Position numbers and translations under genes: made by a program. A DNA stretch of 51,037 nucleotides. It comes from Girardia tigrina (taxonomy: Eukaryota). Of the stretch, positions 1,217 through 1,250 are shown piece after piece. The notes under the pieces are model-generated. The model made no database searches, had not been told where the DNA came from, and worked only from the letters and a program-made list of their open reading frames with translations. The DNA is taken from assembly GCA_001938485.1 (NCBI GenBank), contig MQRK01217395.1, positions 23,223 through 74,259 on the forward strand. The letters are read 5' to 3'. Numbering within the stretch: the first letter of the stretch is position 1; each line of letters opens with the position of its first letter.

Positions 1217-1250
1217 AAATCGAATCCAGATGCACTTTTTACACTTTTTG
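1217..1250 (+). CDS. PTBP: PTBP 34-nt exon ([12 protein letters not shown]), equivalent to vertebrate PTBP1 exon 11 / PTBP2 exon 10
   Basis: ttttag|aaatcgaatccagatgcactttttacactttttg|gtaggt. Phase 0 in and phase 1 out join NLNAE exactly to GVYGDV and supply the PxxLFxLFG helix of RRM3. Confidence 0.92.

Follow-up and report, generated by a model that had tools for sequence, protein, structure and literature searches.

Among the classic cases of homeostatic control by unproductive splicing is the autoregulation of PTB through skipping of exon 11, which has been treated as a vertebrate circuit; AS-NMD autoregulation through exon 11 of PTBP1 is said to have been described by Wollerton in 2004. 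The locus analyzed here raises the question of whether the same switch exists in an invertebrate. A first-pass annotation of the window (the whole stretch of 51,037 nucleotides analyzed in this work) had proposed that a 34-nt frame-shifting exon was hidden in an invertebrate PTB gene, and that the auto/cross-regulatory circuit of vertebrates operates in this lineage and may be ancestral. In vertebrates, exon 10 of PTBP2 (nPTB) is cross-regulated by AS-NMD (Spellman 2007, PMC1940037), and the regulated exons of PTB, nPTB and ROD1 share a length of 34 nt, AG-exclusion zones, distant branch points and upstream PTB motifs (PMC1940037). The analysis described below led us to read positions 1217 to 1250 of the window as the orthologue of PTBP1 exon 11 and PTBP2 exon 10, a cassette in RRM3 of PTB (hnRNP I) which would be subject to PTB-driven NMD feedback; we put the probability of this reading, feedback included, at roughly 0.6.

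Gene identity and genomic context

The gene was searched one exon at a time, each exon as a separate query. Exon C (Table 1) was an RRM_5 match in the domain search, and matched the solved RRM3-4 structures of PTBP1 (1qm9, E 3.9e-46) and PTBP2 (E 4e-44) far better than hnRNP L (E 3e-11). Two features identified the gene as a member of the PTB family: the RRM3-RRM4 tandem with a PTB-type linker (...LTKDYxNSxLHRFKKPxSKN...), and RRM1 together with the start of RRM2, read in a large upstream exon (L002 3387-3937) about 19 kb upstream of the window. Two long N runs are located between this exon and the window, in the middle of the PTB gene, and the exon spliced to position 496 was absent from the readable part of that upstream sequence. 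The best matches in the protein search were cestode and schistosome PTB, with residues common to the window gene and flatworm PTB (e.g. HLRISFSK); both point to a probable platyhelminth or flatworm-like source of the gene. Exon A and exon C were each single-copy in the 1.43-Gb assembly.

Transcripts of near relatives were also sought. The closest protein match was one ENA fragment (P0001, 93% identical), the only close-relative match in the protein collection, from which the species group was otherwise essentially missing. The metagenome scan with the degenerate pattern VLVTNLNAE gave 8 matches, all of them by chance (unrelated, mostly bacterial-looking ORFs), and these were discarded.

Elsewhere in the window, a gypsy-type LTR retroelement was observed at 35500-39600 (gag-like, RT, RNase H and integrase ORFs; short masked stretches). 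Repeats were also present in intron 2 (about 2030-2290 and 5330-6470), where they drew high-depth rearranged contigs in RNA runs X15 and X1.

Exon structure and reading frame

The features of the 3' part of the gene are summarized in Table 1. The 34-nt exon (AAATCGAATCCAGATGCACTTTTTACACTTTTTG; ttttag before, gtaggt after, i.e. AG/AAATCG...TTTTTG/GTAGGT) was not listed by the ORF track, and the claim that it is needed to complete RRM3 was borne out by the reading frame, by homology and by an inclusion junction in RNA. It encodes 11 residues plus the first base of a Gly codon, and these 34 nt, together with GC at 7562-7563, restore an RRM3 reading that aligns with RRM3-4 of PTBP1 and PTBP2. The match of exon C opens at VYGDV, residue 27 of the structure chain, and the 34-nt exon thus supplies the missing residues. 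Its codon positions and phases are equal to those of the vertebrate 34-nt exon, in agreement with the position originally proposed.

Upstream, exon A ends in ...AAT GCC GAG at 722, followed by gtaata; its start, previously placed at 495, had to be moved to 496, where the upstream exon is joined in the RNA contigs (exon A pieces 496-720/723 in X1, X5 and X15). Downstream, exon C is preceded by ccaaag.

Joining 722 to 7562 gives eight codons (AFTVTSCG) followed by the TGA at 7586-7588. The first-pass annotation had located this premature stop about 420 nt before the last junction (8010/8068), and the distance was found to be 422 nt (threshold, more than 50 nt), with more than 500 nt of sequence downstream of the stop. 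The last junction itself is supported by the flatworm-like C-terminus that it creates (...LIEFHNHKLSDKNHLRISFSK). The 57 nt of intron 3 are divisible by three and contain no in-frame stop: its retention would add 19 residues to RRM4, with no truncation.

Table 1. Coordinates of the exons, introns and putative regulatory elements around the 34-nt exon (positions of the window).
Feature	Position	Strand	Description	Evidence
Exon A	496..722	+	Linker and first RRM3 strand; 5' splice site GAG/gtaata	Translation; contigs X1, X5, X15
Intron 1	723..1216	+	494 nt, GT..AG	Contig joint in X1 and X15
AG-exclusion zone	949..1214	+	266 nt; ends at 3' splice site; longest of 2147 AG-to-AG gaps	
C/U-rich island	1097..1196	+	Candidate PTB binding platform; TCCT/CCTC repeats	Composition, YCU count
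UG-rich stretch	1197..1216	+	tggttggttggtgattttag; Y = 0.50, no C; replaces the usual pyrimidine tract beside the 3' splice-site AG	
34-nt cassette exon	1217..1250	+	Start of RRM3 helix 1; phase 0 at 5' end, phase 1 at 3' end	
Intron 2	1251..7561	+	6311 nt; 5' splice site G/gtaggt; U-rich start, 61% T in first 120 nt	
Exon C	7562..8010	+	Rest of RRM3, linker, most of RRM4: (G)VYGDVMRVK...HVLI	
Skip-frame TGA	7586..7588	+	From GTG-AAA of R-V-K; read only if the 34-nt exon is skipped	
Intron 3, last exon junction	8011..8067	+	57 nt	C-terminal homology with flatworm PTB
Last coding exon	8068..8139	+	EFHNHKLSDKNHLRISFSKAGAF; stop TAA at 8137-8139	

RNA evidence for inclusion and skipping

RNA contigs of four runs (X1, X5, X9 and X15) were aligned to positions 480-6479 of the window; all four are Logan contigs, in which presence can be read but amounts cannot. 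Inclusion was observed in X1 (organism A, depth 143) and X15 (organism B, depth 516), whose contigs run from the upstream exon to 496, on to 722 and then to 1217 (the joint, GT..AG, was listed as 720 to 1215, and the cut at +2 corresponds to 722 to 1217). A 40-nt unitig of X9 (organism C, a related species) covers 1215-1251 (depth 163).

Skipping was observed in X5 (organism B, another study). One contig of 871 nt, at depth 13, matched positions 496-723 perfectly, and its unaligned end beyond 723, from which the skipped form was read, continues CGTTTACGGTGACGTCATGCGGGTGAAAGT, i.e. positions 7563-7592 of the window and a 722 to 7562 junction. The skipping proposed from the DNA thus takes place in vivo, as seen in this single assembled contig. 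X5 covers exons and almost no introns, and therefore behaves as RNA; a retrocopy or processed pseudogene was considered an unlikely source of the skipped contig, given this lack of introns and the single-copy state of exons A and C. Organism B consequently showed both splice forms, each in another sample, the skipped one as one contig from one run.

X5 contained no contig with the 34-nt exon (none over 1080-1279), the skipped form being the only one assembled. This form is therefore not obviously unstable, unlike a rapidly degraded minor isoform. By analogy with nPTB in non-neuronal cells, a sample with only the skipped form would fit a strongly “off” state.

Sequences upstream of the exon

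The AG-free zone upstream of the exon lies between the last upstream AG (947-948) and the AG of the 3' splice site (1215-1216), and is the longest in the 51-kb window. Candidate yUnAy branch points were found at -88, -122, -155, and -228 to -264, the farthest being a TTAAC consensus (949-953) directly after the last upstream AG. No match was closer to the 3' splice site than the one at -88; the exon is thus preceded by an extended AG-exclusion zone and a distant predicted branch point.

YCU triplets are the core recognized by PTB RRMs in published structures. Twelve of them were present in the last 150 nt before the exon (top 0.3% of the 150-nt windows in the 51 kb), and the C/U-rich island is 65-85% pyrimidine, with eight copies of TCCT. 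The stretch containing it (1085-1216) has 34% C, vs. 17% in the intron. The repeats of the island are of the TCCT/CCTC type, and it has none of the classic UCUU and CUCUCU motifs. In organism C (X9), the related species, positions 982-1203, which hold the island, are replaced by 102 unalignable letters, and the island sequence is therefore not strongly conserved. The predicted RNA structure of 1080-1300 was no more stable than that of shuffled sequences (z = 0.22).

A second PTB paralogue and related copies

A second PTB paralogue was found on the minus strand of G000:C215177. Its 34-nt exon (AAGATCTATCCAGATGCACTTTTTAAGTTGTTCG, reading KIYPDALFKLFG; L010, reverse complement, 1284-1317) has the same phases as the window exon, and is followed by a 62-nt intron and then by (G)CYGDVTRVKIMFNRK. 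The two 34-nt exons share an 18-nt identical core; identical codons amounted to 5 of 8 in the mini-exon and 6 of 18 in the next exon, a small sample in which the excess was not significant. Upstream of the exon, the paralogue has a 163-nt AG-free zone and no YCU enrichment.

An identical PTB-like exon, 42% identical to exon C, was present on three other contigs of the assembly (G000:C51137, C159225 and C235426; L006-L008), which may represent haplotigs, a third paralogue or members of a repeat that carries the exon. Another copy of the PTB-like exon, with stop codons, is located on C215659.

Conservation of the exon across animals

Annotated loci were fetched and the exon was located by script, homologues being found exon by exon. 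A 34-nt exon with identical phases was found in the wasp Trichomalopsis, the fluke Fasciola gigantica, the nematodes Trichinella spiralis and Pristionchus pacificus and the sea anemone Exaiptasia diaphana; its bounds are conserved, starting after the codon that follows ...NLN/NLE and ending in the first Gly base before (V/C)YGDV. Its presence in a cnidarian and in bilaterians makes the cassette no younger than the common ancestor of the two groups. Among partial gene models of vertebrates, some start at xVTPxxLFxLFG and others have residues translated from intron sequence immediately ahead of (G)VYGDV; together with the 34-nt length given in PMC1940037, they indicate that the boundaries are probably the same in vertebrates. 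The mapping of size and position across orthologues, proposed as a check, thus returned 34 nt and the same phases from Cnidaria to vertebrates. The downstream intron was lost in the monogenean Cichlidogyrus, and in a tick locus the mini-exon was not found within 3 kb of upstream sequence. In the amoebozoan Pelomyxa schiedti (L023 1839-1963), the upstream position, following ...NLVPE, is exactly that of an intron of 38 nt, and there is none before VYGDV; judging from this sequence, the upstream intron position may predate animals.

The upstream sequences were less uniform. Exaiptasia (top 1%) and Pristionchus (top 3.4%, with CTCTCT repeats) showed an upstream enrichment of YCU triplets, and both have CTCTCT/TCTT tracts there; the triplets were not enriched in the wasp, Fasciola or Trichinella. 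AG-free zones measured 100 nt in Exaiptasia, 45 in Pristionchus, 80 in the wasp, 2 in Fasciola and 54 in Trichinella; long zones were absent from the last three. In Pristionchus pacificus, the intron that precedes the exon (L022 5501-5725, 225 nt) contains a long (CT)n/CTCTTC tract, which from its sequence would be a textbook PTB-type binding site.

About one tenth of the representative PTB gene models inspected lacked or garbled the micro-exon residues (P0122, P0132, P0140, P0141, P0144, P0145, P0173, P0199, P0211 and P0268). This looks like a systematic annotation failure, or like models built on skipped transcripts.

Skipping in other invertebrates

Skipped forms were also found outside this species group. 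The Logan transcript contig L016, 91-99% identical to Pristionchus ptb-1, reads ...VILVSNLEEQ/AYTGMFFA-stop, and its +1 frame after the skip continues GVYGDVLRVKILF...; contig L020, also from an invertebrate, reads ...VLLVSNLNEQ/AYTGMYIV-stop and then (G)LYGDVHRVK. The stop is the same in L016, L020 and the window: a TGA from the GTG-AAR of R-V-K.

In C. elegans, a frameshifting skip of ptb-1 exon 11 accounted for 16% of junction reads, 5439 vs. 28,758 (Tourasse et al. 2017, PMC5741048); the authors described the event as unannotated and as a possible source of truncated protein, and connected it neither with NMD nor with autoregulation. Another ptb-1 cassette had been scored in a previous array study as lacking a premature stop (PMC2265522), and the C. 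elegans NMD transcriptome paper lists ptb-1 only among the hnRNP genes, with no event-level data (PMC2768976). No paper describing a PTB exon-11-type switch in invertebrates was found in our searches of the literature available without subscription.

Comparison with known systems

The window exon resembles PTBP1 exon 11 and PTBP2 exon 10 in its 34 nt and its place in RRM3 (after ...NLNxE, ending in the Gly of GVYGDV), in the frameshift and early stop caused by skipping, in the extended AG-exclusion zone, distant branch point and pyrimidine-rich region upstream, and in the existence of a second paralogue with the same exon. It differs from them in belonging to an invertebrate gene, in its 6.3-kb intron 2 and in its island, which is TCCT/CCTC-rich where the vertebrate sequences are UCUU/CUCUCU-rich and which varies in the related species of X9; in the window gene, moreover, the dependence on NMD and PTB is putative. 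PTB-family proteins also limit their own production by unproductive splicing in the case of hnRNP L exon 6A and of the poison exons of plant PTB genes, but in those cases a poison exon is included, whereas here an essential frame-shifting exon is skipped.

Among invertebrates, the closest parallel is C. elegans ptb-1 exon 11, also a frame-shifting skip in a PTB gene: a stop at the R-V-K codons would agree with the 167 C-terminal residues lost there, and at 16% of junctions the skipped form is abundant (PMC5741048). Of the two worm genes, it is the Pristionchus orthologue in which the 34-nt length was seen, and it also has a skipped transcript contig. PTB and nPTB repress ROD1/PTBP3 exon 2, which is likewise 34 nt long and has an AG-exclusion zone of 168 nt (PMC1940037); this exon, however, is N-terminal in its gene and therefore not orthologous.

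Proposed regulation of the exon

The window gene would work as follows. Inclusion of the exon gives the full four-RRM protein, and skipping an mRNA unable to make RRM3-4. The exon may be weak on account of its tiny size, of the UG-rich flank of its 3' splice site and of a branch point 88 to 264 nt upstream, and PTB, from this gene or from the second paralogue, may bind the C/U island between branch point and exon and cause skipping. When PTB is abundant, its pre-mRNA would in this way be channelled into a form that is unproductive and prone to NMD, as negative feedback or cross-regulation.

Part of the circuit originally proposed for this lineage stood up well: the exon, its phases, its skipping, the early stop and the conservation from Cnidaria to vertebrates. 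The vertebrate model cannot simply be carried over, however, in view of three observations: the dominance of the skipped form in X5, the poor conservation of the island in X9, and a patchy pyrimidine enrichment, absent in several phyla. Nor is NMD in the invertebrates examined to date known to depend on exon junctions as a general rule.

The exon might instead be constitutive and essential, the skipped transcripts being splicing noise whose product is eliminated by surveillance or by chance, with no role in feedback. Very small exons are inherently hard to define, the 3' splice site is poor, the skipped form was seen here in one contig only, and the cis features are not common to all orthologues; in addition, no function was assigned to the ptb-1 skip by the authors who described it in C. 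elegans (PMC5741048). We consider this explanation unlikely: the skipped form was the assembled form in X5 and not a trace, the 16% of C. elegans is far above the noise class of the same paper (PMC5741048), the AG-free zone and C/U island match those of regulated vertebrate exons, and both flanking introns were kept in a gene in which RRM1 and the start of RRM2 occupy one large exon. Similarly unlikely is a regulated AS-NMD switch under a factor other than PTB, such as a UG-binding CELF/TDP-43-like protein at tgtgttggttggttggtg, which would not be autoregulation. The 20 nt beside the 3' splice site are UG-rich and have no C, the island lacks optimal UCUU and CUCUCU, and the paralogue has no YCU enrichment, all of which speaks for such a factor; the strong enrichment of YCU triplets upstream of the window exon, and the CTCTCT/TCTT tracts at the same place in Pristionchus and Exaiptasia, point to PTB.

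Regulated skipping could also serve to make a protein, namely an RRM1-RRM2-only form ending in AFTVTSCG and possibly a separate RRM3/4 fragment started at ATG 7579-7581 (MRVKV...), both with functions of their own. That ATG, the Met of VYGDVMRVK, is located 5 nt before the TGA and opens a frame of about 168 codons; gene callers report such ORFs in many species (P0063, P0088, P0098 and P0078), the skipped mRNA reached a level at which X5 yielded no other assembled form, and a truncated protein was what the C. elegans authors proposed (PMC5741048). The downstream ORF, however, is deprived of strand 1 and helix 1 of RRM3, making normal folding of that domain impossible, and in vertebrates the skipped mRNA is an NMD substrate, a truncated protein not being the reported outcome (PMC1940037). 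This is, in our estimation, the least probable of the alternatives. PTB-driven NMD feedback acting on an orthologue of PTBP1 exon 11 and PTBP2 exon 10 remains our preferred reading.

Significance

Conservation of the exon between a cnidarian and bilaterians is evidence that it predates Bilateria, and its skipping probably does so too. A bolder proposal, which we put forward tentatively and to which we give somewhat less than even odds, is that the switch itself was already present in the cnidarian-bilaterian ancestor and was kept as feedback in flatworm-like animals, nematodes and vertebrates, in which case the two paralogues described here would be a cross-regulating pair, each member with its own 34-nt exon and AG-free zone, that originated independently of PTBP1/PTBP2. 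Ancestral AS-NMD feedback has already been argued for SR proteins. The exon reported here is at least as old as the cnidarian-bilaterian ancestor, is skipped in three invertebrate lineages and, in the window, has the same unusual upstream architecture as in vertebrates. At the practical level, gene predictors often miss or garble this micro-exon. If the ancestral reading were true, it would be among the oldest conserved AS-NMD switches in animals, and the ancestry of AS-NMD feedback in hnRNP-type repressors now becomes testable in planarians, C. elegans and Pristionchus.
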